Assembly: GCA_026770705.1 (NCBI GenBank)
Contig: JANJGN010000323.1
Span: 124,001-188,000 of the forward strand
Length of the DNA stretch: 64,000 nt
From: Isurus oxyrinchus
Lineage: Eukaryota
Reading direction: 5' to 3'
In this document: one piece after another, positions 1 through 36,400 of the stretch
Layout of the letters: each line of letters begins with the position of its first letter
Numbering within the stretch: position 1 is the stretch's first letter
The notes under the pieces: model-generated
Databases searched by the model: none
Told to the model about the DNA's origin: nothing
The model's input: only the letters and a program-made list of their open reading frames with translations
Program-made: the position numbers and the translations under genes

Positions 1-404
1 AAGGAGGTTTCACTCTGTNNNNNNNNNNNNNNNNNNNNNNNNNNNNNNNNNNNNNNNNNNNNNNNNNNNNNNNNNNNNNNNNNNNNNNNNNNNNNNNNNN
101 NNNNNNNNNNNNNNNNNNNNNNNNNNNNNNNNNNNNNNNNNNNNNNNNNNNNNNNNNNNNNNNNNNNNNNNNNNNNNNNNNNNNNNNNNNNNNNNNNNNN
201 NNNNNNNNNNNNNNNNNNNNNNNNNNNNNNNNNNNNNNNNNNNNNNNNNNNNNNNNNNNNNNNNNNNNNNNNCAGACAGACACAAACACACACATTCACA
301 CACACACACACACATTCACTCACACACACACATTCACTCACACACTCACTCACACACACAAACACACACACAAAGACAATATCCCAATGACAACAAACTG
401 CGAT

Positions 405-2590
405 TAAGAGCTTCCTACAACTTAACTAAGAGACCAAAGACATATTGAACTGTCTAAAAGTGACCTGTTTTTCAAAGAAATACAAGATTGTACACAGATC
501 AAAAATGGCTGACACAAGTCACCTGATTGCTGATACTGTGAAGTTGATCACTTCTCTGGAAAGGTTCAAATGAATTGCACTGCAGACCTGTTGCATGGAA
601 GTTCACGCCTGGGGTGTGTCAGGGTCCACTTCAAATAGAGACACTCTTAAAAGGAAGGCATTAAAATGCAAAGTGCTGGACTTTGATCAGCTGTAGTTCA
701 ATCAAAACATTGGGAACTGCTCACCAAGCAGATAATCATCAACCATTCAAAACCCCCTGTGGAAGATACAATACCCCCGTCTCCTGTTGATTTATATCTT
801 GAAATGCATCAAAGGTTTCAGAGATGCAAAGATAAAAAAATGGGAATACTAGGTCTATAACAATGAATGCAAAACATGCTGATCGAATTGACTTCAGGGA
901 TATACAGACAGGAGTTTAACAAATGGTTCTGCCAAGCAGATATAAGAGAAAGGAGGGGAAAAAGAAATATGGCAGTCTTCCACAAACACTGCTGGAAAAG
1001 AGCAGAAATGATTTCTCCCTCTCTATCTCTCTGTCTGAAGCTAACAGAATGTCTTCAACAATGTGCAAGTCTGAGCCAGATAAAATACAGGAATCTACAG
1101 AAAACCAACTAATTTAAAACAGCTTCAAACTTCACAGCCTACGTTGTAGTACAAGCAAACGACTCTTTTAATTTTTTATTGGACTCTATAATTATNNNNN
1201 NNNNNNNNNNNNNNNNNNNNNNNNNNNNNNNNNNNNNNNNNNNNNNNNNNNNNNNNNNNNNNNNNNNNNNNNNNNNNNNNNNNNNNNNNNNNNNNNNNNN
1301 NNNNNNNNNNNNNNNNNNNNNNNNNNNNNNNNNNNNNNNNNNNNNNNNNNCTGTGTGTGTGCATTTGTCTGTCNNNNNNNNNNNNNNNNNNNNNNNNNNN
1401 NNNNNNNNNNNNNNNNNNNNNNNNNNNNNNNNNNNNNNNNNNNNNNNNNNNNNNNNNNNNNNNNNNNNNNNNNNNNNNNNNNNNNNNNNNNNNNNNNNNN
1501 NNNNNNNNNNNNATTATTTTTCCTCCAGTTAGGTAACTAATAAACTTACTCTTTCTTTGACTCCACCAAACGTGGTTTAATTGGTTCATTCTTAACAATC
1601 AAAGAGACTTGCTTTGGAAATTGCATTTGGGGGAAAATATATTTTAAACCCTTTTTTTCAACCAACCATAATTACCTCTTAAACATCTTAATCTCATTAC
1701 TACTGAATTCAAAGCCCACATCTCAAAACATACAAGTTGGAAATTAGTTGTGACAGTTGTTTCAAGTTTCCCTCCAGGGTTTGAACAGCTCAGCATTTAC
1801 CATCTGTTATGTCATAACAGAGCTTCCTTCAACTTAACCAACGAGCCAAAAACGTATTGAACTGTTTAAAGGAGACCTGTTTTTCAAAAGTACAAGATTA
1901 GGCATTGATCAAAAATGGCTGTCACGAGTCACCTGATTGCTGATACTGCAAACTTGATCACTTCTCTGGACAGCTTCAAATGAATTGCACTAAAGACATG
2001 TTGCATGAAAGTTCTCACTGAGGTGTGTCAGGGTCCACCTGAAACAGGGGCTCCATTAAAAATGCAAAGCGCTGGACTCTGATCACTGTAGGTCTATCAA
2101 GCTAATGGGAACTGCTCACCATGCAGATATTCATCAGTCATTCAAAACCTCTTGTGGAGGATGAAATGCCTTCATCTCCTGTTGATTTATATCTTGAAAT
2201 GCATCAAATGTTTCAGAGATGCAAAGATCAAAAAAGGGATTACTTGGTCTGTGACAATGAATGCAAGACATGCTGATCGAATTCCCTTTGGGAATATACA
2301 GACAGGAGTTTAACAACAGGTTCTGTCAAGCAGATATAAGAGAAAGTAGGAGGAAAAAGAAAGATGGCAGTCACTCAAAAACACTGCTGGAAAAGAGCAG
2401 AAATTCTCTCTCTCTCTTTCTGAAGCTAACAGCGCATCTTCAACAAAGTGCAAATCTGAATCAAATCACCACCAGGATGCCACAGGAAACCAATTAACCT
2501 TGAACAGCTGCAAATGTCAACAATCTACACCTCAAAGTCAAGCAATTGTATTAATCATATATTCTTTTAAATTTTTATTGGACTCTAACN
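405..2590 (+). repeat. Diverged direct duplication (~405-1190 vs ~1818-2590)
   Basis: Colinear matches from agagcttcct..caacttaac through tttttattggactcta. Confidence 0.85.
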
Positions 2591-4413
2591 NNNNNNNNNN
2601 NNNNNNNNNNNNNNNNNNNNNNNNNNNNNNNNNNNNNNNNNNNNNNNNNNNNNNNNNNNNNNNNNNNNNNNNNNNNNNNNNNNNNNNNNNNNNNNNNNNN
2701 NNNNNNNNNNNNNNNNNNNNNNNNNNNNNNNNNNNNNNNNNNNNNNNNNNNNNNNNNNNNNNNNNNNNNNNNNNNGTGAGTGTGTGTCTGTCTATGTACC
2801 CTTGTGAGTGAGTGTGTGTGTGTGTGTACATGTGTGCGTGTGGATTGTTGCATCTTTATTATTAACGTTATTTAAAAATAGTGATCACACAAGCCTGGTT
2901 TCTAAGGAAATGAAACTGCAAACAATTTACAGTAAAGTGAAACATACAGGAATAATCTATTTATTTTGAGCTGATGATATATAATTATACATGAGGCATG
3001 TTGCTAATTTCAAATGTCATCTGAAATATGGCAGGTCTGACAGAGCAGCATTCCCTCAGTGCCCACCCTCTGACAGTGCAGCACTCCCTCAGCATTGACC
3101 CTTTGAGAGTGCAGCACTCCTTCAGTATTGACCCTCTGGAAGTGCAGCACTCCCTCAGCACTGACCCTCTGGGAGTGCAGCTCTCCCTCAGTACCGACCC
3201 TCTGGAAGTGCAGCACTCCCTCAGTGCTAACCCTCCAACAGTGCAGCACTCTCTCAGTACTGACCCTCTGACAGTGCAGCACTCCCTCAGTACTGACCCT
3301 CCAACAGTGCAGCACTCCCTCACTGGGAAGAGTCCGTCCGCATTTTAAGCTGAAACCTTGAGACGGTCTCAAAATCCCAACCTTCCATCTCAGAGAGAGA
3401 GAGTGCGTTTATGTGAGAGAGAGAGACAATGTATGTGTGAGAGACTGAGAGTGTGTATGTGTGAGAGAGCAAAAGAGAGGTAGAGTGTGTGTGCATGAGA
3501 GAGGGAGGTAGCTTGTGTGTGTGAGAGAGAGAGTGTGTGTGAGAGAAAGAGAACGTCTGTGAGAGTGTGAGAGAATTTATGTGTGAGAGAGAAAGATAGA
3601 GAGAATGTGCGTGTGAGATAGTGTGTGTGCAAAAGAGAGTGTGTGTCTGTGAGAGAGTGTTTGTGTATGTGAGAGTGTGTGTGTGAGATCATGTGTGTGT
3701 GTGTGTTTGAGAAAGAGGGTGTGTGTGTTTGAGAGAGGGAGTGTGCGAGAAAGAGATGGTGTGAGTGTTTGAGGGAGGGGGAGATTGTGTGTTTGAGACA
3801 GGGAGTGAGAGAGAACATGTGTGTGAGAGAGAGAGTGTGTGTGTATGTGTGTGTGTGAAAGAGAAAGTGTTTGTGCAAAATAGTGTGTGTTTGAGAGTAT
3901 GTGTGCATGTGTGAGTGTGTGTGTGTGTGTGTGCTAATGTTTGTGTCTGTGTGTGTGTGAGGGTTTGTGTGTGAGTGAGTTTGTGCGTTTGTGTGCGTGT
4001 GTGTGTGCATGTGTGTGCGTGAAAGAGTGTTTGTGCAAAAGAGTGTTTGTTTGAGAGTATGTGTGCTAGTGTTTGTGTGTGAGTGNNNNNNNNNNNNNNN
4101 NNNNNNNNNNNNNNNNNNNNNNNNNNNNNNNNNNNNNNNNNNNNNNNNNNNNNNNNNNNNNNNNNNNNNNNNNNNNNNNNNNNNNNNNNNNNNNNNNNNN
4201 NNNNNNNNNNNNNNNNNNNNNNNNNNNNNNNNNNNNNNNNNNNCGAGTTCACAGTTACACACGTTGCTAGGGACCACTTTTCCGCCTCTCTGTCAGACTG
4301 TGTGTATCTGACAGCAGGTCAGGCAGAAATAGTCCAGAACGCGCTGTAGTTTTGTAGCATTGAAACAACGACAGGAACTAAATGAGTGCTGCACCAAATA
4401 AAGACATGGAGTG

Positions 4414-4664
4414 ACCACACCAAAAAACCACGTGACTTCCCCAGTTTCACATCTCCCTCAAACACAGAAAAACTGGGTTAACACTGACCCTCCTCCCAGA
4501 GCCAGTTCACCTCGTGTCCGATGCAGTCAGGAGAGGAAGATCATCTCTCCTCCGATCCTGCTAAACTGAACATTTCCAGAATTAGATCAGCTCCCTGAAG
4601 TGTCTCCAGTTAGTCATTCATCTGACAGGATTGACTCTACAACCCTGGGGACTCATTCTCCTGT
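4414..4664 (+). promoter_or_regulatory. Candidate leukocyte-type promoter and non-coding first exon of gene D
   Basis: ACCACA (RUNX-type) at 4414; CCACGTGACTTCCCC (E-box abutting an ETS core) at 4428-4442; donor ct|gtaagt at 4663. Confidence 0.4.
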
Positions 4665-6899
4665 AAGTAAAACACTTGCTGCTCCTGTCAAATCTCTTCT
4701 GTACAGCATGGTCTCTGGATGTCCCAGAACACTTTACAATAGAGTTCACCCTTTTTTCGAAGTGTGGTTACTGTTGTAATGTAGGAAACGCAGCAGCCAA
4801 TTAGCGCACAGCAAGCTCCCACAAACAGCAATGTGATCATCTGTTTTTGGTGATGTTGGTTGAGGGATAAATATTGGTCCCAGGACACCGGGGAGATCTC
4901 CCCCCTGCTCTTCCTCCAAATAGTGGCTGTGGGATCTTTCACACCCGCCCGAGAGGGCAGACGGGGGTCTCGGTTTAGTGTCTAATATTGGACTAATCTC
5001 CAGGCGAGGTTGGCTGGATGGATTATTGACAAGGTCCATTCACCCTGTAAAGAGTTTCTCTGTTTGAAATACCCGATCAAACATCGAGTTCTGTGTCTAA
5101 ACCTTGTGTTGAAAAGACACCTTTCCAGCTCTTCACCTGCCATTAGCTTGTTGAGTCTTCACACGCTCCGTCTGTCCGTGACCAACCCCTCTTAGCTCAT
5201 CCTTTCCTTGTCGTACATCGAGCTGTTCATCCTGACGGGTTCCATCCTTCCCAGTAACACTCCATCTCCGACATCAAACTAACTCCCAACACGTTGATGA
5301 ATTGTATGGATTCCAGCGTCAGTTGGTTCTGTCTGAGGCTGTTTCTCTGATCGGGGACCGAGCTGTTCTGAACGGACATTGTGTTCAGCAGTTCTTATTG
5401 CAGATCAGGCTGTTCAACCAATGCTGCTGTTCACTGAGGTGACTCCGATTCTACATTCACACATTAATGATCTCATGTCCAGCAGCAAACATCTGAATGA
5501 AGCCAGGTTCAAGAAAAACCCAGCTGCTTGATCCGACAGTTATCTGTTCAGGCATGGCCCCTTGTTCCAAATAACAAACATTATTTAAAAATAGTCATCA
5601 CATGAGCCTGGTTAACAAGGAAATGAAACCATGAACAATTTGCATTGAAGTGAAACGTACAGGACTAATCTATTTATATTGGGCTGATGATATAGAATGT
5701 TACACGAGGCATGTTGCTAATTTCAAACATCATCTGAATTACGACAGTTCTGACAGTGCAGCACTCCCTCAGTACTGACCCTCTGACAGTGCAGCACTCC
5801 CTCAGTACTGACCCTCTGATAGTGCAGCACTCCCTCACCACTGACCCTCTGACAGCGCAGCACTCCCTCAGTACTGACCCTCTGACAATGCAGCACACCC
5901 TCAGTATTCCCTCACTGGGGAGAATCTGCCTGGGTTTTGAGCAGAAATCATAAGCAGGTCTTAAAACCACAACCTTCCGTATTAGAGAGAGTGTGTCTGA
6001 GAGAGAGAGAGAGCGAGAGAGACAGAGAGAGTCTGTGAGAGAGAAAAAGAGTTAGAAAGAGTGTGTACATGTGTGAGGGAGAGTGTGTGTGTGTGTGAGG
6101 GAGAGATTGTGCGTATCAGAGAGAGTGTGTGTGTGTGTGAGGGAGAGAGTGTGTGTGTGTGAGGGAGAGTGTGTGTGTGTGAGAGGGAGNNNNNNNNNNN
6201 NNNNNNNNNNNNNNNNNNNNNNNNNNNNNNNNNNNNNNNNNNNNNNNNNNNNNNNNNNNNNNNNNNNNNNNNNNNNNNNNNNNNNNNNNNNNNNNNNNNN
6301 NNNNNNNNNNNNNNNNNNNNNNNNNNNNNNNNNNNNNNNNNNNNNNNNNNNNNNNNNNNNNNNNNNNNNNNNNNNNNNNNNNNNNNNNNNNNNNNNNNNN
6401 NNNNNNNNNNNNNNNNNNNNNNNNNNNNNNNNNNNNNNNNNNNNNNNNNNNNNNNNNNNNNNNNNNNNNNNNNNNNNNNNNNNNNNNNNNNNNNNNNNNN
6501 NNNNNNNNNNNNNNNNNNNNNNNNNNNNNNNNNNNNNNNNNNNNNNNNNNNNNNNNNNNNNNNNNNNNNNNNNNNNNNNNNNNNNNNNNNNNNNNNNNNN
6601 NNNNNNNNNNNNNNNNNNNNNNNNNNNTGAGAGAGATTCTGTGTGTGTGTGAGGGAGAGTGTGTGTGTGTGAGGGAGNNNNNNNNNNNNNNNNNNNNNNN
6701 NNNNNNNNNNNNNNNNNNNNNNNNNNNNNNNNNNNNNNNNNNNNNNNNNNNNNNNNNNNNNNNNNNNNNNNNNNNNNNNNNNNNNNNNNNNNNNNNNNNN
6801 NNNNNNNNNNNNGGGAGAGAGTACATGAGAGTGAGAAAGAGGGAGACAGCAGAAGAGAAAGATAGAGAGAGATGGTAAATGTTTGAGAGAGAGAGAATG

Positions 6900-7880: not shown

Positions 7881-9033
7881 ATGGGAGAGGTCGGTCTGAT
7901 ACTGATCTTCATCAGCTTGCTGCAAGGTACAAATTCATTACTGATCGGAACTCAGGGAATTGGATTCTTTCCTGGAGTGAGGAAGTGAACATTTAATTTT
8001 AGAGAACAGGGTTAGTGATCACACAGAGAGTGAGTGATTAGCGAGTCAGAGAATGTAGCAAAAGAAAAAGCCTCATACGGACTCGAAACACCAACTCTGT
8101 TTCTCTCTCCACAGATGCTGTCAGACCTGCTGAGTTTTTCCAGCATTTTCTGTTTGTGCATCAGAGAGCTTGTTTCAATAGGAATGACAGTGCATTTATA
8201 TAGCACCTTTAATGCAGTAAAACATCCTTATTGCTTCACAGGATTCCCCCACAAGGGGTAACATCCCCTCAGCATCGACCCTGTCAAACCCCCCACCACC
8301 TCAGAATCTTATATGTTTCAATAAGATCACCTCTCATTCTTCTAAACTCCAATGGATACAGGGCCCAACCTGCTCAACATTTCCTCATAAGACAAACCCC
8401 CTTCATCCCAGGAATCAGCCCAGTGATCCTCCTCTGAACTGCCTCCAATGCAGAGTCTATCCCTCCCTAAGTAAGGAGACCAGAACTGTACACACTGCTC
8501 CTGATACAATCTCACCAACGCCCTGTACAGTTGTAGCAAGACTCCCCTCCTTTTATACTCCATCCCTTTGCAATAAAGGCCAACATTCCACTTGCCTTCC
8601 TCATTCCGTGGTGTTCCTGAATGCTGACTTTATGTGATTCATGTACAAGGACACCCAGATCCCTCTGTACCGCATTCTGCTGCCTCCCTCCATTGAAGTA
8701 ATATTCTGCTTTTTGATGTCCTGTCTCTTCCCTTGTTGCCTTTCAGGAGTGACGTCAGAGGGATGGTCTATGAAGGCGCTGCCTCGGAGGGCCATCAGCA
8801 GCTCTTGTGTGGTTATTCCGTGTAGCTTTGACTTTCCTTCCCACTCTTACACAGCACTGCACGGAGCTTGGTATAAATATTGGTATAGATGGAAATATAC
8901 CATCACATACACCAAAGATCCCAACTATGGGATGGCCACATTCGTGGGACGTGCTAAAATAATCGGCGACTTGGAAGGGAAGAATTGTTCGGTGAGGATT
9001 GACAGTCTCAGAGCTGAAGACAGTGACGTGTAT
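7881..9033 (+). pseudogene. Siglec-like gene D remnant: leader exon 7881-7926 plus V exon 8747-~9033 truncated by a retrotransposon
   Basis: MGEVGLILIFISLLQG|gtac, then tttcag|GVTSEGWSMKALPRRAISSSCVVIPCSFDFP...GDLEGKNCSVRIDSLRAEDSDVY, which runs into gag-like sequence with a stop at 9048. No downstream Ig exons were found. Confidence 0.8.
8262..8660 (-). mobile_element. CR1-type LINE 3' fragment
   Basis: LYRALVR..EQCVQFWSPYL, LSYEEMLSRLG. Confidence 0.8.
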
Positions 9034-10170
9034 TGCACCCAATTCTAAATCTTTTCACCAATTAGTCGACCTCATGAAGATGTATTTTCAGCTGAAGCCG
9101 TGGGTAATAATGCAGAGGTTTAAGTTTAACTCCAGAGTAAGGGCCCAGGGAGAGTCCATCGCAACCTATACAGTGAAGTGGAAGCAGGTGACTGAGCACT
9201 GGGACCTCGGAGACACACTCAATGACATGTTGCGCGGCCGATTGGTTTGTGTCGTTCACCCCAACGCCATTCAGAGCCGTTTACTCGCAGAAGCCGACAT
9301 CGATTTGAAGCGCACCATGGAAATAGCGCCAGGCATGGAAAGTGCTGGGAGAGACTGGCGGGATTTACAGGATGTACAACATGGCGCCAGTCCTCAGCTG
9401 GGACAGGAACCAACCACCGGGCGTGTGACTCAAACTGGAGAGAGAGGGAGAGAGAGAGACAGCCGCCAAGCGAGAGACAGTCTCTGCCGCTCCAGAAACT
9501 AAAAGGCTTCGTGGGAGTATTTCAGCAGCAACTCCGAAGTTGGCCTGTTCTCGATGTGGGGGGGAGTGAGCTCGTACCGGACACCTGCAGGTTCAAGGGG
9601 GCAGAATGCCATCACTGCCACAAGAAAGGGGTGGGTAATAAAGCAATGCAGGGTGAAATCGAGACAGCCCATCAGGCAGTGCACCAACATGATGGAAGTG
9701 AATAATATCACAGAGCCTGAAGCTGCTGATACCGATGTCTATTCCCTGTCCAATGTCACAGTGGTAAAAACTGAACCTATAACCATCACAACCCAAGTGA
9801 ATGGGCAGCCACTAGTAATGGGGCAGATACGGGAGCCTCAGACACAGTGGTGGAAGAGCCCACATTTAAACAGCTAAATGAAGGAACCCAGACGCTGAAT
9901 TTAGAGCCAACAATGGATCAGCTGAAGACACACACTGGAGAATCCATACAGGGAAAGGACCTCATCCCAGTACCTGTGTCCTACAGGCAGCAGACAGCCC
10001 AGCTTCCAGTGATCATAGCGACAGGTGAGGGCCCTAGTCTTCTGGGCCGAGACTGGTTCCAGAAAACCAAGCTCAGCTGCTCTGAAATGTTTCACTGGAG
10101 GAGTTGCTGAGTTGCTGGGGGAATATGAGAGTGTATCTCGGAATGAGTTTGAAGAATTGAAGCATCCTCA
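9034..10170 (+). mobile_element. Degenerate Gypsy-type LTR retrotransposon fragment (gag, zinc knuckle, protease)
   Basis: QRFKFNSRVRAQGESIATY, LNDMLRGRLVC, ECHHCHKKG, SLLGRDWF; frameshifted. Confidence 0.85.
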
Positions 10171-12230: not shown

Positions 12231-12608
12231 GTAATAGAAACTTACCTGTCAGAAGCCAGTTTATGTTGATGTGAGTCTGAGTCGATGACTGAACCCAGTT
12301 GGTGACTTGTTCCATACAAAGCAAGAACGTTCATGACCTTCAATGTTCCTGGATAAACCATGAACAAAGCTGGTGACAGACAGTCTCCACATGGTAAACA
12401 CTGACCAATCAACACATGACATGGCTGTTAACCCTTAAACCTCAGCGTAAATCAGTTCCCCCTCGAGGCCCCTTGTCCAAAATAAAAGCAACGCACACAA
12501 TTTGTAAAATAGTAAGTGTAGCAATGAGAGGAGTAAGGGGTTAGGGGGCATGCGGTTCACCTGATTTGCCGACATAAGAACCAGCCCCTCTGTTTTTGCT
12601 ATGTTGTG

Positions 12609-12821
12609 TTGCGTCAATATGAACACATATTTGCACAAGGTGAAGGGCGTTGCGGAGGGACTGATAGTTCTCGGCGCCAGACAGTCAATGTCCCAGTGAC
12701 CTTACTGCTGGTCCCAGGCCAGTGGGACAGGGAACATCGACACTGCAATATCCAGAAATGGGTGTGATACCACACAGCTACCCACCCGCGGCTGTCCCCT
12801 TCAAGTGTTTCAGGTATAAGA
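12609..12821 (+). promoter_or_regulatory. Candidate hepcidin proximal promoter
   Basis: TTGCGTCAAT (12609) and TTGCACAA (12631) C/EBP-type sites. TCGGCGCCAGAC contains the GGCGCC BMP/SMAD element (12673-12678) overlapping a CAGAC SMAD site. TATAAGA at 12815 lies about 90 nt before the ATG. Confidence 0.6.
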
Positions 12822-12906
12822 GCAGGAAGCTCCTCGAGTTACAAACCAAAGCATCAAAGCAGAGCCAGAAGATCAGAAGAGACAGGCAGAGATGGGAAGC
12901 TCCCAG

Positions 12907-12984
12907 ATGAAATGGCGACTTGTCTTGTTCACTCTGACTTTGCTGCTCTCCCTGCAGCTGAGTCACTTCTTCTCCTTGTCGAGG
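12907..12984 (+). CDS. HAMP: HAMP exon 1 coding part (signal peptide)
   Basis: ATG at 12907, hydrophobic MKWRLVLFTLTLLLSLQLSHFFSLSR, donor AGG|gtaagc. Confidence 0.85.
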
Positions 12985-15900
12985 GTAAGCTAAGAGATGT
13001 CCCTCTGGGTGAGGTGTTTCTTGCACATGACTCTACGTCTACCACCCAGATAGACTGGTCACTTCCGCAGTTTGATATTATTATGTTCGTGCCTTTAATA
13101 TTGTCGCCCTCTATGAATTTAACATCATTTCCTTCTGTCGTTTCCCCTGAAATTCTCATTCTTGTTTTCAATCCCTCCTCAGCCACTCCCTATCTCTGTA
13201 ACCTCCTCCAGCCCATACAACCCTCCCTATCTCTGTAACCGCCTCCAGCCCCTACACCCCTCCCTATCTCTGTAACCTCCTCCAGCCGCTACAACCCTCC
13301 CTATCTCTGTAACCTCCTCCAGCCCCTACACCCCTCCCTATCTCCGTAACCTCCTCCAGCCCCTACAACCCTCCCTATCTCTGTTACCTCCTCCAGCCCC
13401 TATAAACCTCCCTATCTCTGTAACCTCCTCCAGCCCCTACAACCCTACCTATCTCTGTAACCTCCCCCAGGCCCCACAACCCTCATGATCACTGTAACCT
13501 CCTCTAGACCCTACAACACTCCCTATCTCTGTAACCTGCTCCAGACCCTACAACCCTCCCTATCTCTGTAACCTCCTCCAGACCCTACAACCCTCCCTAT
13601 GTCTGTAACCTCCTCCAGGCCCCATGACCCTCAGAATCACTGTAACCTCCTCCAGCCCCTACAATGCTCATGAACTCTATAACGTCCTCTCCACACTATA
13701 ACTCTCCCTATCTCTGTAACCTACTGTGGCCCCTACAACAGTATCTATTTTGGTAACCTCCTCCAGCCTCTACAACCCTCCCTACCTCTGTAACCTCCTC
13801 CAGCCCCCACAACCCCCCCATCTCTTTAACCTCCTACAGCCCCTACTCACCTCCCTATCTCTGTAACCTCCTACAGCCTCTAGAACCCTCCCTATCTCTG
13901 TAACCTCCTCCAGCCGGAACAACCCTACCTAAATCTCTGGTCTGAGTCTCACTCCAGGGAATTCAGTCCCATAACGTCGGTCAACACTCCGTGCTGAGGG
14001 AGTGCTGCACTGTCAGAGGGTCAGTAGTGTGGAAGTGTTGCACTATTGGAGGGACAGTACTGAGTGAGTGCTATACTGTCGGAGGTCAGTACTGAGGAAG
14101 TGCTGCATTGTTACAGGGTCAGTACTGTGGAAGTGTTGCACTGTCGGAGGGTCAGTACTGAGGGAGTGCTGCACTGACGGAGGGACAATACTGTGGGAGT
14201 GCAGCACTATCGAAGGGTTAGTACTGAGGGAGTGCTGCAGTGTCAAAGGGTTAGTACTGAGGGAGCACAACAATGTTGAATGAGACATTAAACTGAGTCC
14301 CCCGTCTGCCCTCTCGGGCGGGTGTGAAAGATCCCACAGCCACTATTTGGAGGAAGAGCAGGGGGAGTTCTCCCCGGTGTCCTGGGACCAATATTTATCC
14401 CTCAACCAACATCACCAAAAACAGATGATCTAGGCCATGATCACATTGCTATTTGTGGGATCTTGCTGTGCACAAATCAGCTGCCACATTTCCTACAGTG
14501 TGAGTGCACTTCAAAAACATCCTTCAGTGGCTGTGAAATGCTTTGGGATGTGGTGAAAGGCGTTAGAGAAATGCAAGTCTGTCCTCCTCCCCCTCTCTCT
14601 CCTGTACCTCTCTCTCTCTCTCTCCCTCTCCCTCAATCCTCCTCTCACTTTCTCCCTGATAAATTCTTTCTTTTTGCAGGTTGACACTGCTTTAGGTTCT
14701 TCGACGATTGAGAAATCTGTGGATTCCCCGGACACGGTAGGTGGAAATTCATTCCTTATTTTAAGGTTTCTCCCTGCTCGTTTCTTCCACAGAAAGTTTT
14801 CTGATTTCAAGCTGATTTCAGTGGCAGTCTGTCTCGGTTATACTCAGGAGGCATGTTTGAAATCGAGCCCCCCCCGCCACCCCTTTTTTTGCAAAGCTGG
14901 GAAGAGGCAATTCCAAGGAAGTGAACATATCCCCACAGGAATTTTAAATGTAACCCACGCCGGGAATAGTGAGAGGGAGACTGATCCAGCCTGGGAGTGG
15001 GTTAAAGAGAGGCTGGGAGTCGAGAGTCGGAGAGAGGGATGGAATGAGGGAGGGAGGGATTGGAAGAGAGAGACAGAGAGTGGGACGGGGAGGGGTGAAA
15101 GGGAAAGAACATAGGTGGGAGAGAGTGACAGAGGGAGAAATTAAAGAAGAGATGCAGAGTGAGGGAAAGTGAAAAGGGAAGAGAGATTGTCCAAGAGAGA
15201 GAAATTAACAGGAAAGGGAGAGTTACAGAGTGAGCGAAAGGTACAAAAATAGTGTGAGAGAGAGGGAGAGATACAGAGTGGGAGAAGGAGACAGGGGAGA
15301 GAGAGGGAGAGAGACAGGAAAAGGGAGAGAGGAGAGAAAGATTGGGAGAGAGGGCAATTGAGCGGAAGAGTAGGAGAGAGAGAGACAGGGAGAGGAGGAG
15401 TGGAAGAGAGGAAGAGAGAGAGAGATATGGAGCAGGAGAACACCTCCTCCGGTCCCGATGTTCCTCCAAAATCTCTGACATTACTGCATCTCCCGGGTCC
15501 CCCTGATTCCCATCGCTCCACCATTGGTGGCCGTGCCTTCAGCTGCCTGGGGCCCTGAGCTCCGGAATACCCTCCCTTAACCTCTCTGCCTCTCTCTCTC
15601 TCTCTCCTTTAAGACGCTCCTTAAAAACTGACATCTTTGACCAAGCTTTTGGTCACCTAACCCTAATATCTCCATATGTGACTCAGTGTTAGACTTCTCT
15701 CTGATTTACGCTCCAGTAATGTGGGCTGGGACATTTTGCAATGCCAGAGGCGCTGTGTAAATGCAAGTTGTGAGTGTTATGTGGAAGGGAGATCCCAGGC
15801 GGCAGTCAGTGCCAGAGACTGGAGTCATTGTGCGCAGACCGTATCTCATCTCTCCGAATGCACAATCGGTTTGACTGTCAGCCAAAGCATTTTTGATATT

Positions 15901-17183
15901 TGATCCTTCTAACTGTTTATAACCAGGCCTACATCAAACACCGAGAGGCTGGTTAATCAACAGACACCTTAGAGGATCGAGTGAAAGACAAAGAGGACTT
16001 GCATTTCTCTAGCGCCTTCCAACACATCAGGACGTCCCAAAGTGTTTCGCAGACAATCAAGTGCTTTTTTCTTTCATGTGAGGTCACTGATGTAATGTGG
16101 GAAAAGAATCATCCATTGGCGCACAGTAAGATCCCACAGACAGCAGCATGATAATGACCAGCGCGCTCCCAGTACTTGCACTGCAAGTGTCAGTTCAGGG
16201 TGTCTGCTCGATTCTCTGCGACTCTCAGCTCTGAGTTAAAAGGACCACCAGGCGTAATTGAGGAATGACCGAGCTATCGGAGGGTCAGTATTGAGGGTGT
16301 GCTGCATTGTCAGAGGGTCAGTACTGAGGGAGTGCTGCATTGTCAGAGGGTTAGTACTGAGGGAGTGCTGCATTGTCAGAGGGTCAGTCTTGAGGGAGTG
16401 TTGCACTGTCGAAGGGTCAGTACCGGCGGGGGGATGCACAGTCGGAGGGTCAGTACTGAGGGAGTGTTGCATTGTCAGAGGGTCAGTCTTGAGGGAGTGC
16501 TGCACTGTTGGAGGGTCAGTACTGAGGATGTGCTGCATTGTCAGAGTCAGTACTGAGGGAGTGCTGCACAGTCGGAGGGTCAGTACTGAGGGGGTGCTGC
16601 ACTGTTGAAGGCGCTGTCTTTCAGATGAGACATTAAACTGGGGCAACCAATCTGCCCTCTCAGGTGGATATAGAGGATTCCATGGCCACAATTTAAATGA
16701 AGTGCGTCAGGAGTTGGGGGGTATGTGTGGAGGGGGTGGTGGGGGCTGGATGGGTGGAGTTATGTCCGCTTTCCTGGGGCAAACATTTATCCCTCAACTG
16801 ACATTGGTAAAAAACTGAAAATCGGGGCCATTATCACATTTCTGTTTGTGGGATCTTGCTGTGCGTGAATTGCCTGCTGCGTTTCCTACATTACAGCGGT
16901 GAGCTCACTTCAGAAAAAGTCCTTCCTTCAGCTGTGGAACACTTTGGGCCATCCTGAGGAGGGGAAAGGCGCTATAGAAATGCGCCATCCTCCTTCCAAT
17001 GACGCGCCTGATTGAAATGATGCCTTCTTTCTTTCCGGAATGTTCTCACCTATTGTGCTCCTGCTTTTCCAGGGCTCCTTGCTGCAGCGCCAGAAGAGAA
17101 TGGGCAGATTCTGCAGATTCTGCTGTAACTGCTGTAATTGGAGAGAATCAAATGAGACTTGTGGTCTCTGCTGTAGATATTAG
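12907..17183 (+). CDS. HAMP: Hepcidin prepropeptide gene, 3 exons: join(12907..12984,14680..14736,17073..17183), 81 aa
   Basis: Spliced translation is MKWRLVLFTLTLLLSLQLSHFFSLSR|VDTALGSSTIEKSVDSPDT|GSLLQRQKR-MGRFCRFCCNCCNWRESNETCGLCCRY*. All junctions are GT-AG phase 0. It has a signal peptide, an RxKR furin site and the hepcidin C-x2-CC-x-CC-xn-C-x2-CC cysteine pattern, in the three-exon layout typical of HAMP. Confidence 0.92.
13185..13930. repeat. ~37-bp minisatellite (also 53110-53640)
   Basis: Unit CCCTCCCTATCTCTGTAACCTCCTCCAGCCCCTACAA. Confidence 0.95.
13990..14582 (+). mobile_element. Deu-domain SINE with an expanded internal 33-bp minisatellite (HAMP intron 1)
   Basis: gagacattaaac..aaagatccc..gttctccccggtgtcctgg..ccctcaaccaacatcac core; related copies at 4705-4980 (-) and 16277-16990 (+). 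Confidence 0.7.
14680..14736 (+). CDS. HAMP: HAMP exon 2 (propeptide, 57 nt)
   Basis: Strong acceptor ttctttctttttgcag| and donor ACG|gtaggt; phase 0-0; VDTALGSSTIEKSVDSPDT. Confidence 0.8.
17073..17183 (+). CDS. HAMP: HAMP exon 3 (furin site and mature peptide, which starts at 17100)
   Basis: Acceptor ctcctgcttttccag|; GSLLQRQKR MGRFCRFCCNCCNWRESNETCGLCCRY then TAG. Confidence 0.93.
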   Translation, partial: GSLLQRQKRMGRFCRFCCNCCNWRESNETCGLCCRY

Positions 17184-17544
17184 ACCCTGGCCTCATTCAC
17201 GCAAGGTCATCCTGCACCATGCCACAGCCTCTCCCCTCCTTATCATTGCTTAGCAATCTATTTCACACAGGCCCTGTTCATTAATTCCAACTGAAACTTT
17301 ACCTGCGTTTTACAGCAGGGAAAGAAGCCATTCGGCCCATCTGCTCCATGCTGGTGTTTCTGCTCCACACGCGTCTCCGCCCACCCCTTCTCCATCTCAC
17401 CCCATCACCATATCCTTCTATTCATTTCTCCCTCGTGTGTTTATCCAGCTTCCCCTTAAATACATCGACACTATTCACCTCACGTGACTGTGTTTGTGTC
17501 TGTCTTTATGAGCGTGTGTGTGTGTGTGTGTGACTGTCAATATG

Positions 17545-17975
17545 TGTGTGTCAATGTGAATGAGTGAGTGTGTCAGTGTGTCTGTGTGGGTGTGTGTGAC
17601 TGTCAGTGTGTGTCAATGTGAATGAGTGAGTGTGTCAGTGTGTCTGTGTGGGTGTGTGTGACTGTGTCAGTGTGTGTCAATGTGAATGAGTGAGTGTGTC
17701 AGTGTGTCTGTGTGGGTGTGTGTGACTGTGTCAGTGTGTGTCAATGTGAATGAGTGAGTGTGTCAGTGTGTCTGTGTGGGTGTGTGTGACTGTGTCAGTG
17801 TGTGTCAATGTGAATGAGTGAGTGTGTCAGTGTGTCTGTGTGGGTGTGTGTGACTGTGTCAGTGTGTGTCAATGTGAATGAGTGAGTGTGTCAGTGTGTC
17901 TGTGTGGGTGTGTGTGACTGTGTCAGTGTGTGTCAATGTGAATGAGTGAGTGTGTCAGTGTGTCTGTGTGGGTGT
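17545..17975. repeat. 64-bp GT-rich tandem repeat
   Basis: tcaatgtgaatgagtgagtgtgtcagtg recurs at 64-bp intervals. Confidence 0.9.
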
Positions 17976-19844
17976 GGGTGTGTGAGTGTGCAAGTGAATG
18001 TGTGAGGAATCTTATGACTAAGTCATTTGAATGGATGTTACTGGGGTTAATGATAGTTAAAATTCAGAGAGATGTAAAGCGGGCTCCTGATTTTGCTGCT
18101 TTATGCTCCCGGGCACAGATTCACCCCGACAATGTGTTCATGATTCACCATTATCTTGTCGGGACTTTAATTGTAAAGATTATGATTTGTAAAAAAAAAT
18201 GAATAAACAACTTCTGTCTTCACAAAGTGTCTGGCTTGGTATTTCAGGCTACTTGTCTCCCCCTCACCCTCCCCCCCCACCATACCCCCCACACCAGGGA
18301 ACAATTGTCCCCCCTTCCTCTGAAGTTCGGGGTAAAGATCAGCTTTGTTCAATGCAAGCTGTTCCGACATCGAGAACGTTGTTACAAATATCTCACAAAG
18401 GGCACACGCCATGATAGCCCACTTTCAACAGATTTTACCAGTTGACCAGGTAGAAAAGCTTTTCATAAACCACAACGTAGGTGTTCAATTCTTGCTGCTG
18501 TTTGCTTAATGCTCTCATAACTGCTATAACCTCTCTAGTTCCACTACATAACAACACAAACATAAATAAACAGAAGCAGGAGTAGGCCTTTTGGCCCCCC
18601 CAAGCCTGCTTGTCCATTCAATTTGAACCTGGCTCCTGCTGAAAGTTATTTAAGTTGAAGCGATAAAGCCATCAGGTGCAGGGATTAAAATGTAAGCAAA
18701 GGAAAAATAATACTTAGAGATGAGAGTTAAAATCAGTTTCTGTCAAGTATTATAGTGAGGCCCATTGCTCTGGATTCCTTCTTTCCAGAGTGAAGGGTTT
18801 GAAACTAGGAGTCACATTCAGCAGCTGCGTTGTCTTCTCTAGTTGACTATTTGGAGGTTGCCTGTAGATGTGAATCAGCAGGTCAGCAGCTTTGAGGAGT
18901 GAGTGAAGGTCCCTTTTATTTACAGGATCTGCCACAGGATGTGCAGGAATATTCCTGCTGAATCCCCCATCCTTGTATTCATGAAGGTTTTGAAACTGGA
19001 AGTCATATTCAGCAGCTGCAATGGCCTTTGTAGTCAACTGTCTGGAGGTTGCCTGTACAGGTGGACTCGGCATGTCAACAGCTTTGTTGGGCAGGGGACA
19101 CGGGTAGTGAAGGTCCCTTTTCTTTAAAGGCTCTGCCAGTGCAAAACTTGATGATCCTGGGTCAAAATCATGTAACTCCCTCCCCAAAAGCACTGTGGGT
19201 GTGACCTATGGAGGGTCCTTGGCTTCGACAAGCAGCCTACCAGCTCTGCTCTCAATTCCTCTTCACACTTGCTTCCTTCCTCCACTGGTCTTTACTTTGT
19301 TATAGTGTTAGTGTCCGCTCTGCCTTTTTTGTTGCTTTCCCAATTCTTCCCACCAACTCTCTCTGGCTTGATCCTTCTCTGTGCTCATCTCATTGGTTTG
19401 GGTTTCTATCCGTTCATTGACCTGGTGTAATCTGAAACTGGTGCAATCAGGTAGGGGTGGGGGGGTTGGCGCTGGCCGTGGGTGGTGATACACGGCTACC
19501 TTTTTACCAAAATTCTTTCACGGGATGTGGACAGCGTTTGTTACCTGTTCCAGACTGACCCCTTGAGAAGGGGGTGCTGAGCTGCCTTTTCGAAGTGCTG
19601 CAGTTCGCCTGGTTTGACTGGTCTGTGGCGGGTTTTGATATAACTCAGTAGCTTGCTCGGCCATTTCAGGGGCCAGTTAAGAGTCAACCACATTGTTGTG
19701 GGTCAGGAGTCACACGTAGGCCAGAATGGGTAAGGACGGCAGGTTTCCTTCCCCAAAGGGCATTAGTGACCCAGATGGGTTTTTGCAACAATTGGCCTTA
19801 GTTTCATGGTCACCATTACTGAGACTAGCTTCGCATTCCAGATG

Positions 19845-20925
19845 TCACATCCAGTCGTGGACAATTAAACAACTCACTGGAGGAGGAGGCTCCACAAAAA
19901 TCCCCATCCTCAATGATGGAGGAGCCCAGCACACCAGTGCAAAAGACAAGACTGAAGCATGCGCAACAATCTTCAGCCAGAAGTGCTGAGTGGCTGATCC
20001 ATCTCGGCCTCCTCCGGAGGTCCCCAGCATCACAGATGCCAATCTTTAGCCAATTCGATTAATTCCACGTGATATCAAGAAAGGGCAGAAGGCACTGGAT
20101 ATTGCAAATGCTCCAGACCCTGACATTATTCCGGCAATAGTACTGAAGACTTGTGCTCCAGAACTTGCTGCGCCCCTAGCCAAGCTTTTCTGGAATTTTC
20201 TAGTACAGCTGCAACACTGGCAACTACCCGGCTATGGGGTACATCCTGTACACAAAAAGCAGGACAAATCCAACCCAGCCAATTCCCCAGCAGTCTATTC
20301 TTGATCATTACTACAGTGATTGAAGGGGTCATCAACAGCGCTTGCAAGCAGCACCTGCTTACCAAGAACCTGCTCACTGACGCTCAGTTTGTGTTCCACC
20401 AGGATCATTCAGCTCCTGCCCTCATTACAGCCTTGGTTCAAACATGCACAAATGAGCTGAACTCCAGAGGTGAGGTGAAAGTGACTGTCCTTGACATCAA
20501 GGCAGCATTTGACTGAATGTGGCAAAACAAGGAGCCCGAGCAAAACTGGAGTCAATGGGAATCGGGGGAAAACTCTCTGCTGCTTGGAGTCATACCCAGC
20601 ACAAAGGACGATGGTTGTGATTATTGGGGGTCAATCATCTCAGTTCCAGGACATCACTGCAGGAGTTACTCAGGGTAGTGTCCTAGGCTCAACCATCTTC
20701 AGCTGCTTCATCAATGTCCTTCCTTCCATCATAAGGTCAGAAGTGGGGATGTTTGCTGATGTTTGCACAATGTTCAGCATCATTCACGGCTCCTCAGATA
20801 CTGAAGCAAGTTATGTCCAAATGCAGCAAGACCTGGACAACATCCAGGCTTGGGCTGACAGGTGACAAGTAACATTCATGCCACACAAGTGCCAGGCAAT
20901 GACCAGCTCCAACAAGAGAGAATCT
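19845..20925 (+). mobile_element. CR1-clade LINE reverse transcriptase fragment
   Basis: VTVLDIKAAFD, GVTQGSVLGSTIFSCFIN, MFADV; frameshifts. Confidence 0.88.
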
Positions 20926-22345: not shown

Positions 22346-23809
22346 TCTCAAAGGCAATTGGGGATGGGTAACAAATACTGGCCTAGTCAGCGACACCAAC
22401 ATCCCTGAAATGAATAAGAAAAAAATGTATCAATCAATTAAATTTATTGATTAATCGAATCTAAATTCCTCCAGCTGCCGTGGTGGGATTTGAACCCTTA
22501 CCTCCAAAGCATTCACCTGGGCCTCTGAATCACTGGCCTAGTGCCATTCCCATTGTGCGACTGTCTGCTATCATCATGGCTCTTTCACATCGATGTGGAA
22601 GTCCTGATAAAAGAAGCATTGGACGAGGTACATAAGGTGACAAATCAGGAGCTCCATTGCTCAATAGGAATGGAAAATAAAGACAAATGAACATAAACCT
22701 TCCAGTCGCTAATTAGTGAGGTAGTGCAGCACTGTCGGAGGATCAGTACTGAGGGAGTGCTGCACTGTCAGAGGGTCTGAACTGAGGGAGTGCAGCACTG
22801 TCGGAGGCTCAGTACCGAGGGAGTGCTGCACTGTCGGAGGGTCAGTACTGAGGGAGTGCAGCACTGTCGGAGGTTCAGTACTTAAGGAGTGCTGCACTGT
22901 CGGAGGGTTCGAACTGAGGGAGTGCTGAACTGTCGGAGGGTTTGAACTGAGGGAGTGCTGCACTGTCGGAGGGTCTGAACTGAGGGAGTGCTGCACTGTC
23001 GGAGGGTTTGAACTGAGGTAGAGCTGCACTGTCGGAGGGTCAGTACTGAGGGAGTGCTGCACTGTTGGAGGGTTTGAACAGAGGGAGTGCTGCGCTGTCT
23101 AAAGAACATTGTACAAATTGTACAAAATTGCATCTGATGCCTGTGTCTCATGCACACATGAAGTTCATGCACACAACAGGAATATTTCTCGCTGTTTCTG
23201 AGCAGCAAGGCAGCCTTCATATCGCACCACCCACTGGCAGGAGAGTGTGCAGCTGCAATGTGACATGTTTACTTTGGAAATTTCTATTATAAAGATGGAC
23301 AGAGGAATTCATCTGATTGGAAAACATGACAATATGAAGTAATGTCTTTGAGCCAAGAATTTGGCAGCAAAATAAGAATTTTAATCTATAAGTATCTACA
23401 GAACAGGCTGAGCATTTTAATCACTTGTGTTAATCAATGTAATTTTATTCATAACCCAAATGCTTCTTACAATCTATCGCAGCATGAAAAAGGTGCAGCA
23501 TTCAGAAAGCACATTCCAATCAGAGAACAGAGTTTAGCAACATCACATTTCTGTTCATTCCTATTCGACCATGTTGGCTGCACACAGCCAGACAATGCCG
23601 TGGTTATGATGTGTCCACACAGCAGGACTGGGGAGCACCAGGTATAAGGAAAAGTTTCAGCTTGCTGAGGAGAAGAAGGAGAATCTCTCGTTCCAGGTTT
23701 CTCTCCGTACATTAAGAAGCAGGCATGCCGATGTTTCATTGCACTCTGTCTGCTGATGGGAGTCCGCTTGGAAATTGCTGTTTGTGCTGATGGAAAGAAT
23801 AAGCTTTTC

Positions 23810-24667: not shown

Positions 24668-26349
24668 CTAGAGAACACACAGAAAGAAATCATCACTGGC
24701 TCTCCGCTTTCAATCTCTCACTCTGGCTGAACAATCAAGCTTCATATCACTGCAACATTTGCTGTAATATTGACCCATCCACTGGGATTCAATGTGGAAT
24801 GAATGTTTTCATTGTAAACACTCTAAGAGTGGACAATCGGAACTTTCCCCTTAGCGTGGAACATTGGTGAGAATGGATCATTGTGCTGTTGGACTCCCTG
24901 TCCAATGTTTCTCTCCATCGCTGTGTATAGGATTGTGCTGTAGAAAATTCTGGAAACGTTTAGTGCAGGGTGGAAATCCATCTCGGACGCGTGTGCGAAT
25001 CGGGCAGCATCGAGATGGACTCCCCCATGAACTTACACCCCCCGCTTAATAAACAGTTCCAATCTTTACCCAGAGAGAGGGGAGAATGTGGAACTCGCTC
25101 CCACAGGGAGTGGTTGAGGTGAACAGTATCGATGTATTTAAGGGGCAGGAGGGTCGGTAACCAGAGGGACACAGATTGACGAACCGGAGGGGGAGATGAG
25201 GAGAATTTGTTTTGACAGAGTGAGTTGCTGTGATCTGGAAGGCGCTGCCTGAAAGGGCAGTGGAAGCAGATTCAGTAGGAACTTTCAAAAGGGGAATTGG
25301 ATAAACACTTGAAGGAGGAAGATGGGGGCAAAGTGGAGTGGTGGTTAGTGGATCTGATTGGATAGAACATTGAAAGACCTGGCACAGGCACTATGGGCTG
25401 AATGGCCTCCTCCTGTGCTGTACCATTCTCCGCTTCCATGATCTCTCCCCCAGTCAGTAACGACTCCAGATCCCTCTTGAAGGTGACAGAGAATCAGCAA
25501 CCACCACACCCACTGACAGCACATTCCCGAGGATCACTACTCTCTGGGAAAAGATGAACTTGCCAACATCCAGCCTATTCCTGTTTCCCAGAGAGTGTAA
25601 ACCCTTCAGGGAGGCACTGAGGAAGTTTTCAATAAAATGACATCAAATCTACCGTTTGAGAAATAATTGAATTCTGATGAACTCACAGCTTGTGTAGCAA
25701 ACTGGGAAGTGGAGTTGCTTGAAAAGCTGGGAAACACAAGGATTAAGTGCTACAATGCCACCACTGGTAGGAGACTGTAACTACAGCGTGACGTTTACAT
25801 AGGCAGTCATCATTATAAACAGAGGCATTGGACATACTGGGAAATATGTGCACTGGAATGGTGAGTAAATGATGTAAGCTTTTCGCCAGCAGGAATTCTC
25901 TTCCTAAACCTCTCCACATCTCTCTTTTTCTCTGATACACAAACAAAGTCACACAGATTCAGATAAGGAGGATTTGGGACCGGTGATTGTTCGAAGGGTT
26001 AGCTTTCAGGAAGCTTCTTAAAGGGAGAGAGAGAGTTGGAGAGGCAGAGAGTATCTGTGAGAGCCTCTATGCATCTGAATGTCTGTAATAGACTTTAGAA
26101 TTTCCATATTCTGAGAGAGTGCTGCACTGTCGGAGGGTCAGTACTGAGGGAGTGCTGCACTGTCGGATGGTCATTACAGAGCATGTGTTGCACTATTGTA
26201 AGGTCAGTACTGAGGGAGATCTCCACTATTGGAGGGTGAGTACTGAGGCAGTGCTGCACTGTCAGAGGGACATTAATCAGGGAGTGCTGCACTGTTGGAG
26301 GATCAGTACTGAGGGAGTGCCGCACTGTTGAAGGGTCAGTATTAAGGTG

Positions 26350-26566
26350 CTGATTTACAAGACAGGACAATGGATTAGGAGCTCTCAGAACTGCCCCCAT
26401 GATTTCCAATCATTCCGTTACTTACCCAGGACCTGTCCGACTGCTCGCCTGGAGAGGAACTGCCCACACGCTCTGCTTGGGCTGAATGACCTCTTCCTGT
26501 GCTGCTCCCTATTTGTGTTTAATTAGAAAGGGTGGATGTGTCACTGTGAGTCAAAATGAGGAAGTG
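26350..26566 (-). pseudogene. Third copy of the 5' exon module joined to sequence from gene B's leader-V intron (deleted paralog remnant)
   Basis: 26426-26510 matches 43311-43395; TGAGTCA and GAGGAAGTG at 26547-26566; 26350-26400 matches 39860-39910. Confidence 0.6.
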
Positions 26567-33400: not shown

Positions 33401-36400
33401 GGGTTTGATTATTGATTCTGAACAGGGTTTGATTATTGATACTGAACGGGGTTTGATTATTGATACTGAACGAGGTTTGATTATTGATTCTGAACGGGGT
33501 TTGATTATTGATACTGAACGGGTTTTGATTATTGATTCTGAACGGTGTTGGGTGTGAGTTTGGTTGGGTTTGGGAGTGACTGTATAAAACATTGCGGATA
33601 CAGGACTGGAGCAGCCATATCAATAACCAGGCTACTGGAGCAGCTGAGAGGCTGGGGATCCTGTGGTGTGTGACACAACTGATTCCTCAAAGCCCAACCA
33701 CGTTCACAGTTTTCATAAAGAGGACCTCGATATTCATCAACACGGTAGTATGATTTGATTCCTGCTTTCCCCTCGCCTCTCTTCTGGAATAGAGATGGAA
33801 ATGGACAGAGTGACAATCACAATGATGTGTATTCGGTGTTGGGTTTGATTATTGGGGAGAGAGTTCCAGATTTCCACTCCCCTTTGTGTGAAGAAGTGCT
33901 TCCTGACATCACCCCTGAATGGCCTGGCTCCAATCTGAAGTTCCAGCCCCCTTGTTCTGGACTCCACCCGACCCCCACCACCCACCCCCACCCGAGGGAA
34001 TAGCTTCTCTCTATCGACCCTATCGAGTGTTTAATCAGTTTGAACCCCTCAATTAGATCACTCCTTAATCTTCTAGACCCGAGGGAATATAATCGTAGAC
34101 TGTGTGTAACCTGTCTGCATAATTTAACCAGAAAGATGTTCTGTCCAACAAACCTAAGCCTCACACCCAGATCTCAATAATCAGTAGAAATCTTTCAAAG
34201 GTATCAATCATTGGAATCTGTCTTTATAAAGTCACAACATCAACAAAGGATGGTGTTGGTGGTGGAAGTGAATTCCAATCGTTCTGTTACTTACCCAGTA
34301 CCTGTCCGACTGCTCGCCTGGGGAGGAACTGCCCACACGCTCTGCTTGGGCTGAATGACCTCTTCCTGTGCTGCTCCCTCTGTGTATTTAATGAGAAAGG
34401 GTTGATGTGTCTCTGTGAGTCAAATCAGGAATTGGGGAACAATTGTGAAAACCGTTTCACTGAAACGTAGGGCCTTAGTGTTGTGTTGTAAGCAAACTGT
34501 TAACCCTTTGTGTCCTGACTCTGTGACGTGATTCCTGTGTAAAGCTGAGCTGTTGGTGAGCGAGTTTCAATTCACTGCTCACTCCAGATGTTGAGGTGGA
34601 TCTTCTGAAGGAGCAGATGTTGCTCAGCGCTCCTTAAAAATGTGAGATACTGAACAATGTGTAAGAGGACGAGAGAGAGAATGAGAAGGAGAGCATTAGT
34701 GGAGATAAGAGAGAGTGAATGAGAGAGAGAATGAGAAGGAGAGCATTAGTGGAGATAAGAGAGAGAGTGAATGAGAGAGAGAATGAGAAGGAGAGCATTA
34801 GTGGAGATAAGAGAGAGTGAATGAAACATGGAAAAAGGAAAGAGATTGCATTCACTAACAAAAGAAAAGTTTTCATTTATATAGCACCTTTCACATCCTC
34901 AGGAGGTCACAAGGTATCTTATGGTGCGGGTCAACACTGCCAGTTACAGGACTGAGTTGTGAAACATTGAGTGTTGGATGAGATGTTAAACAGTATGTGA
35001 AAATCAAAACTCTTCAGGGGCTGTGAAGGGTTTTGGGTTGTGAAAGGTGCTATAGAAATGCAAGTTCTTTCTATAAGGAGAGAAGTTTGAAGAAAAAATG
35101 TTTGAAATCAACCAATTAAACCTTCACACTTACTTTCTCACACACTTGAAGATGAAGAATCCACTCAGTCCAACACTCAAACAGATTCCAGCTCCAAGCA
35201 ATCCTGCTTTCCATTCATTGGAATCTCGCCCTGTAAAATCAGCCAATGAATGACTCCGGTACAGTTTGAGAATGGTTCCCTATGTACATGTAGTAATTCT
35301 GAACTTGTGAAGTGATATTGTCTATGCATGAAAGGTCTATACAAATAACATTTATCTATGTAATATTTATTGATAATATCCATGTACATGCAGGTTTCTA
35401 TAAGGAGGATTCACATATAACAGAGGTGCCAAGCTGCTGAGGTGACACACAGGAATACATACACGCCAAACAGCGGAAACAACATGCTATAGACAGAGCA
35501 AAGCGATCCCACAACCAACGGGTCAGATCTAAGCTCTGCAGTCCTGCCACATCCAGTCATGAATGGTGATGGACAATTAAAGATCTAACAGGAGGAGGAT
35601 GTTCCACAAATATCCCCATCCTTAACGATGGGGGAGCTCAGCACATCAGTGCAAACGACAAGGCTGAAGCATTGGCAACCATGTTCAGCCAGAAGTGCTG
35701 AGTGGATGCTCCATCTCGGCCTCCTCCAGAGGGTCCCAGCATCACAGATGTCAGCTTTCAGACAATTCAATTGACTCCACGTGACATCAGGAATCAGCTG
35801 ATGATACTGGATACAGCAAAGGCTAATGGCCCTGGCAACAACCCGGCAACAGGAAATAATGTGGCTACAAGAGCGGGTAAGAGGCTGGGAACTCTGCGGT
35901 GAGTAATTCAACTCCTGACCCCCCAAAGCCTGTCCACCATCGGACAAGGCACAAGTCAGGAGTGTGATGGAATAATCTCCAATTGCCTGAATAAGTGCAG
36001 CTCCAACAACACTCAAGAAGCTCGACACCATCCAGGAGCAGCTTGTTTGATCGACAGCCCATCCACCAGCATAAACATTCATACCCTCCACCACTGGCAC
36101 ACAATGGCCGCAGTGTGCACCATCTACAAAATGTGCTGCAGCAACTCACCAAGGCTCCTTCGACAGCACCTTCCAAACCCTTAACCTCTTCCACCAAGAC
36201 AGTTCCAAGTCAGTGTGGTGTGTGACTTGGAGGCGAACTTGTGGTGTTGGTCTTCCATGAGATTTGGAAATATATCGGCCGTACCTTCACCGTCGCTGGG
36301 ACAAAATCATGGAACTCCCTCCCTAACAGCACAGTGGGTGTACCTACACCACATGGACTGCAGTAGTTAAAGAAGGCAGCTCACCACCACCTTCTCAAGG

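Follow-up and report, generated by a model that had tools for sequence, protein, structure and literature searches.

A predicted three-exon hepcidin-family gene with an enlarged loop among Siglec-type exons of the shark Isurus oxyrinchus

Control of iron by hepcidin and ferroportin is treated as a constant of jawed vertebrates. A short cysteine-rich frame in the genome of the shark Isurus oxyrinchus (assembly GCA_026770705.1, contig JANJGN010000323.1, positions 124,001 to 188,000) raises the question of whether a hepcidin is encoded there and, if so, whether such a peptide would act as the iron hormone or rather as a defence-type member of the family. The whole stretch analysed, 64,000 nucleotides long, is referred to below as the window, and all positions are counted from its first letter.

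Direct translation of 17100-17183 (plus strand) yields MGRFCRFCCNCCNWRESNETCGLCCRY, encoded by 17100-17180, followed by a stop codon. Its cysteines lie at positions 5, 8, 9, 11, 12, 21, 24 and 25 and satisfy the hepcidin spacing C-X2-CC-X-CC-Xn-C-X2-CC with n=8, while the CC-X-CC pattern is found once in the 64 kb, counting both strands, against 0.17 expected from shuffles. The sole N-X-S/T sequon of the peptide, N18-E-T (17151-17159, plus strand), stands at a distance of nine residues from the C-terminus, immediately before Cys21, a disulfide cysteine. The first cysteine (Cys1) is preceded by MGRF alone, that is, by four residues without a histidine. The calculated pI of the peptide is 8.2, its net charge about +1.4 to +2 and its reduced mass about 3.25 kDa. 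The original prediction had described an eight-residue loop containing N-E-T and the lack of a DTHFP/QSHL-type start; the former is exact in the translation, and the latter is borne out by MGRF before Cys1 and by the absence of histidine at position 3. The assignment to a divergent hepcidin likewise stands, given the cysteine pattern, a match to the Pfam Hepcidin family and a loop of eight residues vs four in human and five in sea bass hepcidins.

The exon encoding this peptide can be joined to two upstream exons and a candidate promoter, with the following features:

12673-12687, plus strand: candidate BMP/SMAD activating element GGCGCCAGACAGTCA in the proximal promoter, a motif match
12815-12820, plus strand: TATA-like box TATAAG, found by motif scan about 75 bp upstream of the first ATG
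12892-12984, plus strand: coding part of exon 1, MGSSQMKWRLVLFTLTLLLSLQLSHFFSLSR, with a signal-peptide-like hydrophobic core and the donor AGG/gtaagc
14680-14736, plus strand: exon 2, VDTALGSSTIEKSVDSPDT, pro-region, with the acceptor tttctttttgcag and the donor ACG/gtaggt, phase 0
17073-17183, plus strand: coding part of exon 3, comprising GSLLQRQKR, the mature peptide and a TAG stop
17088-17099, plus strand: RQKR, a proprotein-convertase site of the furin type by motif (RX[KR]R), directly before the mature peptide
17100-17180, plus strand: predicted mature peptide, 27 residues with eight cysteines
17136-17159, plus strand: enlarged loop NWRESNET between Cys12 and Cys21, from the translation

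All exon junctions are in phase 0 and use GT-AG sites, and the acceptor of exon 3 (ctgcttttccag/G at 17073) is strong. Exon 1 contains a second in-frame ATG at 12907, so that translation could begin at either 12892 or 12907 to give (MGSSQ)MKWRLVLFTLTLLLSLQLSHFFSLSR; the ATG at 12892 has G at both -3 and +4, and the context of the one at 12907 is weaker. The predicted precursor of 81-86 residues is of the usual hepcidin size, its signal peptide having been recognised in exon 1 by eye. Convertase cleavage is inferred from the motif to occur at RQKR, and a minimal site, R-M-G-R, follows at 17097-17108. Within the 64-kb window neither the promoter nor any of the three exons is present more than once. 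In such a scheme the prepropeptide would enter the endoplasmic reticulum by means of its signal peptide, a furin-type convertase would cut after RQKR to release the 27-residue peptide, and the latter would fold as the four-disulfide hepcidin hairpin, with a turn of eight residues instead of four or five.

Several repeat arrays lie in and around these exons. Both introns carry arrays of a unit of about 32 bp (gtcagtactgagggagtgctgcactgtcggagg-like), at 13980-14280 and 16260-16610, and further arrays of this unit are present elsewhere in the window (2988-3408, 22885-23268 and 26092-26409), where, as in the introns, they create long spurious Cys-rich open reading frames; we take the unit for a shark SINE or satellite-type repeat. 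Intron 1 additionally contains a long array of a unit of about 60 bp (ctccctatctctgtaacctcctccagcccctacaaccc-like) at 13160-13920, a similar stretch being found at 53536-53700. Starting about 320 bp downstream of the stop codon, minisatellite DNA rich in GT, whose repeat unit measures about 64 bp (including gtgtgtcaatgtgaatgagtgagtgtgtcagtgtgtctgtgtgggtgtgtgtgactgt), occupies 17500-17980 and separates the stop from the first canonical AATAAA downstream, at 18202.

Membership in the hepcidin family was assessed by searches run exon by exon rather than on the joined precursor. Exon 3 alone matched the Pfam Hepcidin family (PF06446) with an E-value of 6.8e-6 and 26.7 bits, the cut-off being 27. 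Its best match among solved structures was bass hepcidin (PDB 1S6W), with which it shares CRFCCNCC...CG.CCR[FY], the alignment opening a gap of three residues at the loop. A search for homologous proteins with the open frames of 47 and 55 aa that surround exon 3 yielded no candidate, a blank that in such a search says little; phmmer with exon 3 against 1.8 billion representatives retrieved unrelated repetitive proteins only, the ESM Atlas search gave no usable match, and an exact look-up of the exon 3 frame was negative. When metagenomes were scanned for long-loop hepcidin cores by means of a degenerate DNA pattern, 34 loci were recovered, all of them TGC/TGT low-complexity repeats and none a hepcidin. 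An AlphaFold2 single-sequence model of exon 3 was poor (helical, pLDDT 67, pTM 0.34) and was discarded. In the open literature we found no paper containing the motifs of this peptide and no detailed account of any cartilaginous-fish hepcidin; hepcidin is merely listed in one nurse shark plasma proteome and is absent from the supplement of that proteome. The cysteine pattern, the Pfam match and the alignment with 1S6W, taken together with the upstream exons, are far beyond chance, and we hold it highly probable that 12892/12907-17183 is an intact three-exon gene and a genuine member of the hepcidin family.

The surroundings of the gene point in the same direction. Siglec-type exons, detected as stop-to-stop frames, flank it on both sides:

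8638-9045, plus strand: weaker V-set/Ig_CD22 exon, by domain match
36384-36890, 37576-37956, 52476-52847 and 55383-55775, minus strand: C2-set and Ig exons, by domain match
38855-39322, 56457-56927 and 60261-60758, minus strand: V-set/Ig_CD22 exons, by domain match

The best PDB matches of these flanking exons are Siglec-5, sialoadhesin, Siglec-8 and MAG, and among them the window holds only one exon of the hepcidin exon 3 type. Human HAMP adjoins MAG and CD22; because Siglec exons flank the shark gene as well, it lies where a hepcidin would be expected. The last exon may thus be seen as part of an intact, lineage-specific, long-loop gene of the HAMP family at the ancestral hepcidin/Siglec locus. 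The three V-set exons at 38855-39322, 56457-56927 and 60261-60758 are near-duplicates sharing a ...YFFRIEF / ...YFFKIEF motif, and the exon at 56457 has lysine in place of the sialic-acid-binding arginine of the other V-set exons. Judged by eye, open frames at 20124-20862 (plus strand) look like part of the reverse transcriptase of a retroelement (...VLDIKAAFD...). The window also includes eight runs of N, amounting to 1627 bases, at 19-6812 and 48465-48626.

Comparison with known hepcidins delimits what is retained and what is altered in the shark peptide. Human hepcidin-25, the product of HAMP (PDB 1M4F and 2KEF; ferroportin complex 6WBV), has four loop residues and six residues before Cys1. 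The shark gene resembles it in its three-exon structure, in which exon 3 encodes the mature peptide, and in its predicted precursor, which has a signal peptide, pro-region and furin-type site. The cysteine arrangement C-X2-CC-X-CC-...-C-X2-CC, followed by a tail of two residues, is common to both, as are Siglec gene neighbours and a GGCGCC BMP element in the proximal promoter. Conversely, the shark loop counts eight residues vs four and the arm before Cys1 four vs six; the Asp-Thr-His ATCUN motif and an equivalent of Phe4 are lacking, an N-E-T sequon is present, and no STAT-type TTCNNNGAA was found beside the BMP element. When the two peptides are aligned on Cys1, the shark peptide has Gly at human Phe4 and Met at human His3, and nothing beyond.

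The fish peptides at hand for comparison are those of sea bass, Hamp1 (QSHLSLCRWCCNCCRGNKGCGFCCKF) and Hamp2 (HSSPGGCRFCCNCCPNMSGCGVCCRF), in both of which the loop counts five residues and the arm ahead of Cys1 six (PMC5665920). With teleost Hamp1 the shark peptide shares the CC-N-CC core, the CG.CC.[FY] end and a hydrophobic residue directly before Cys1 (Leu in Hamp1, Phe in the shark), but it lacks the QSHLS start, has a loop of eight residues vs five and falls two residues short in its N-terminal arm. Teleost Hamp2, or bass hepcidin, which belongs to a multi-copy family as is more typical of defence-type hepcidins, comes closer: CRFCCNCC and CG.CCR[FY] are common to both, it gives the best sequence match among solved structures, it has no ferroportin-type start and it, too, bears an N-X-S/T sequon in the loop. 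The shark peptide differs from Hamp2 in its loop (eight residues vs five) and in having Phe rather than Gly before Cys1; the candidate BMP element of the shark promoter may be counted as a further difference, one set by the shark side alone. Since the Hamp2 clade arose within teleosts, as the taxonomy would have it, the shark gene should not be a Hamp2 by descent, and an origin independent of teleost HAMP2 is likely on parsimony, in keeping with what had been proposed.

The sequon in the loop is real, and its use is in doubt. The case for its occupancy is weak, so near does it lie to the C-terminus and so directly against a cysteine of a disulfide. Native bass hepcidin, in the work of Shike in 2002, reportedly had the mass of the unglycosylated form. 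Sea bass Hamp2 carries a sequon, N-M-S, at the same place of the loop (PMC5665920). Should the shark sequon be used, the peptide would represent a rare case of a glycosylated hepcidin.

How the peptide might act depends first of all on its N-terminal arm. In human hepcidin the contacts with ferroportin are made by the first five to six residues, which are indispensable (PMC9882908, PMC6272296), and the C-terminal carboxylate of hepcidin joins the metal site of ferroportin (PMC9882908). In sea bass, Hamp1 regulates ferroportin and Hamp2, which is without the QSHLSL start, does not (PMC5665920). The N-terminal arm of the shark peptide is two residues shorter and is without the His and Phe of DTHFPI/QSHLSL, which inclines us towards a defence-type reading, and the short N-terminus makes an antimicrobial role plausible. 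Two properties of the peptide speak against this: a higher net charge would be expected of a membrane-active peptide, and the loop insertion brings in two glutamates. A further point against a purely defensive role is the presence in the promoter of the only exact match in the window to the BMP activating element, a hallmark of iron-regulated HAMP. On balance, judging from the peptide as predicted, there appears to be about an even chance that the gene encodes a defence-type or dual-role hepcidin which would not engage ferroportin in the way human hepcidin-25 or teleost Hamp1 do.

The BMP element was chosen beforehand as a hallmark of iron-responsive HAMP, and does not come from a trawl through motifs. 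Its bipartite consensus is GGCGCCA(N4)GNCV (PMC7669266), for which the window contains a single match vs 0.16 expected per 64 kb, namely GGCGCCAGACAGTCA, which precedes the TATA-like box by about 130 bp; the shorter GGCGCC occurs twice in the 64 kb, one of the two being that at 12673. In human HAMP both BMP-responsive elements are GGCGCC, with BRE1 at -84/-79 (PMC3879105). The region 12400-12906 contains no consensus for STAT (again TTCNNNGAA), HNF4, NF-kB or a USF E-box. As a motif, the BMP element suggests that a hepcidin without the canonical ferroportin arm may be under iron- or BMP-type regulation.

It is on this promoter that the principal alternative is built, namely that the gene encodes the iron hormone of the shark, or a working copy of it: a ferroportin ligand under BMP/SMAD control with a shorter binding arm, whose enlarged and possibly glycosylated loop would face away from the transporter. 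Besides the exact bipartite element, unique in the window, and the position at the hepcidin/Siglec locus, this reading can draw on what the peptide has kept, namely the hydrophobic residue before Cys1 (Phe, where human hepcidin has Ile and Hamp1 has Leu), the Phe before the first CC and the two-residue C-terminal tail, the last being of interest in light of the contact between the C-terminal carboxylate and the metal site. These retained residues would still allow a ferroportin ligand with a co-evolved receptor. In the solved complexes, furthermore, the contacts listed are those of the N-terminal residues and the C-terminus and not those of the hairpin turn (PMC9882908), so that binding need not be impeded by a loop that is long or glycosylated. 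Against the iron-hormone reading stands above all the N-terminus, two residues shorter and without equivalents of His3 and Phe4, when the first five residues are essential in the human peptide; and the BMP element that it invokes is a motif match only. We therefore regard it as possible and somewhat doubtful. A bolder version, according to which the circulating iron hormone of sharks would be a long-loop hepcidin with an N-glycan on its turn, BMP/SMAD control and a four-residue ferroportin arm, the DTHFP/QSHL arm being an innovation of bony vertebrates, seems to us unlikely.

The defence-type or dual-role reading and the iron-hormone reading both presuppose that the locus yields a peptide. It might instead have arisen by duplication of an expressed long-loop hepcidin gene and be silent or in decay, and the plus strand indeed has no canonical AATAAA or ATTAAA between the stop codon (17183) and 18202. 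This is countered by the state of the gene, in which both ATGs, both donors, both acceptors and the open frame are intact, as are the eight cysteines, the convertase site, the TATA-like box and the BMP element, and a silent copy is accordingly quite improbable. A related organism's RNA runs (their type being guessed) share 6-9% of the words of the stretch 12700-17400, which is about the exonic share and could equally come from repeats; as a sign of expression this figure was discounted.

Public sequencing runs were also consulted for the locus itself. Three studies of the same organism provide DNA runs that contain 42-72% of the sampled words of 12700-17400, which constitutes general support for the locus, and the DNA runs of a second organism contain about 35% of the sampled 31-mers of the same stretch, a share that implies a sister species with a divergence of roughly 3% at the locus, if estimated from the shared words. 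To explain the long loop by faulty assembly or consensus calling in an ordinary hepcidin exon is very hard to justify, as nothing positive favours it, the extra bases (12 relative to human, 9 relative to bass) keep the reading frame and form no simple repeat, and much of the 4.7-kb stretch recurs in DNA runs of several samples and studies and of the second organism, a support that is not specific to the loop.

The predicted peptide thus combines a kept disulfide core, a shortened arm and a doubled turn with a sequon, and the promoter of its gene looks responsive to BMP. If it is merely a defence-type paralogue, it would represent an ordinary lineage-specific expansion of a known family. More broadly, the locus raises the question of whether the ferroportin-binding arm was already present in the common ancestor or whether sharks may rely on a differently built ligand.
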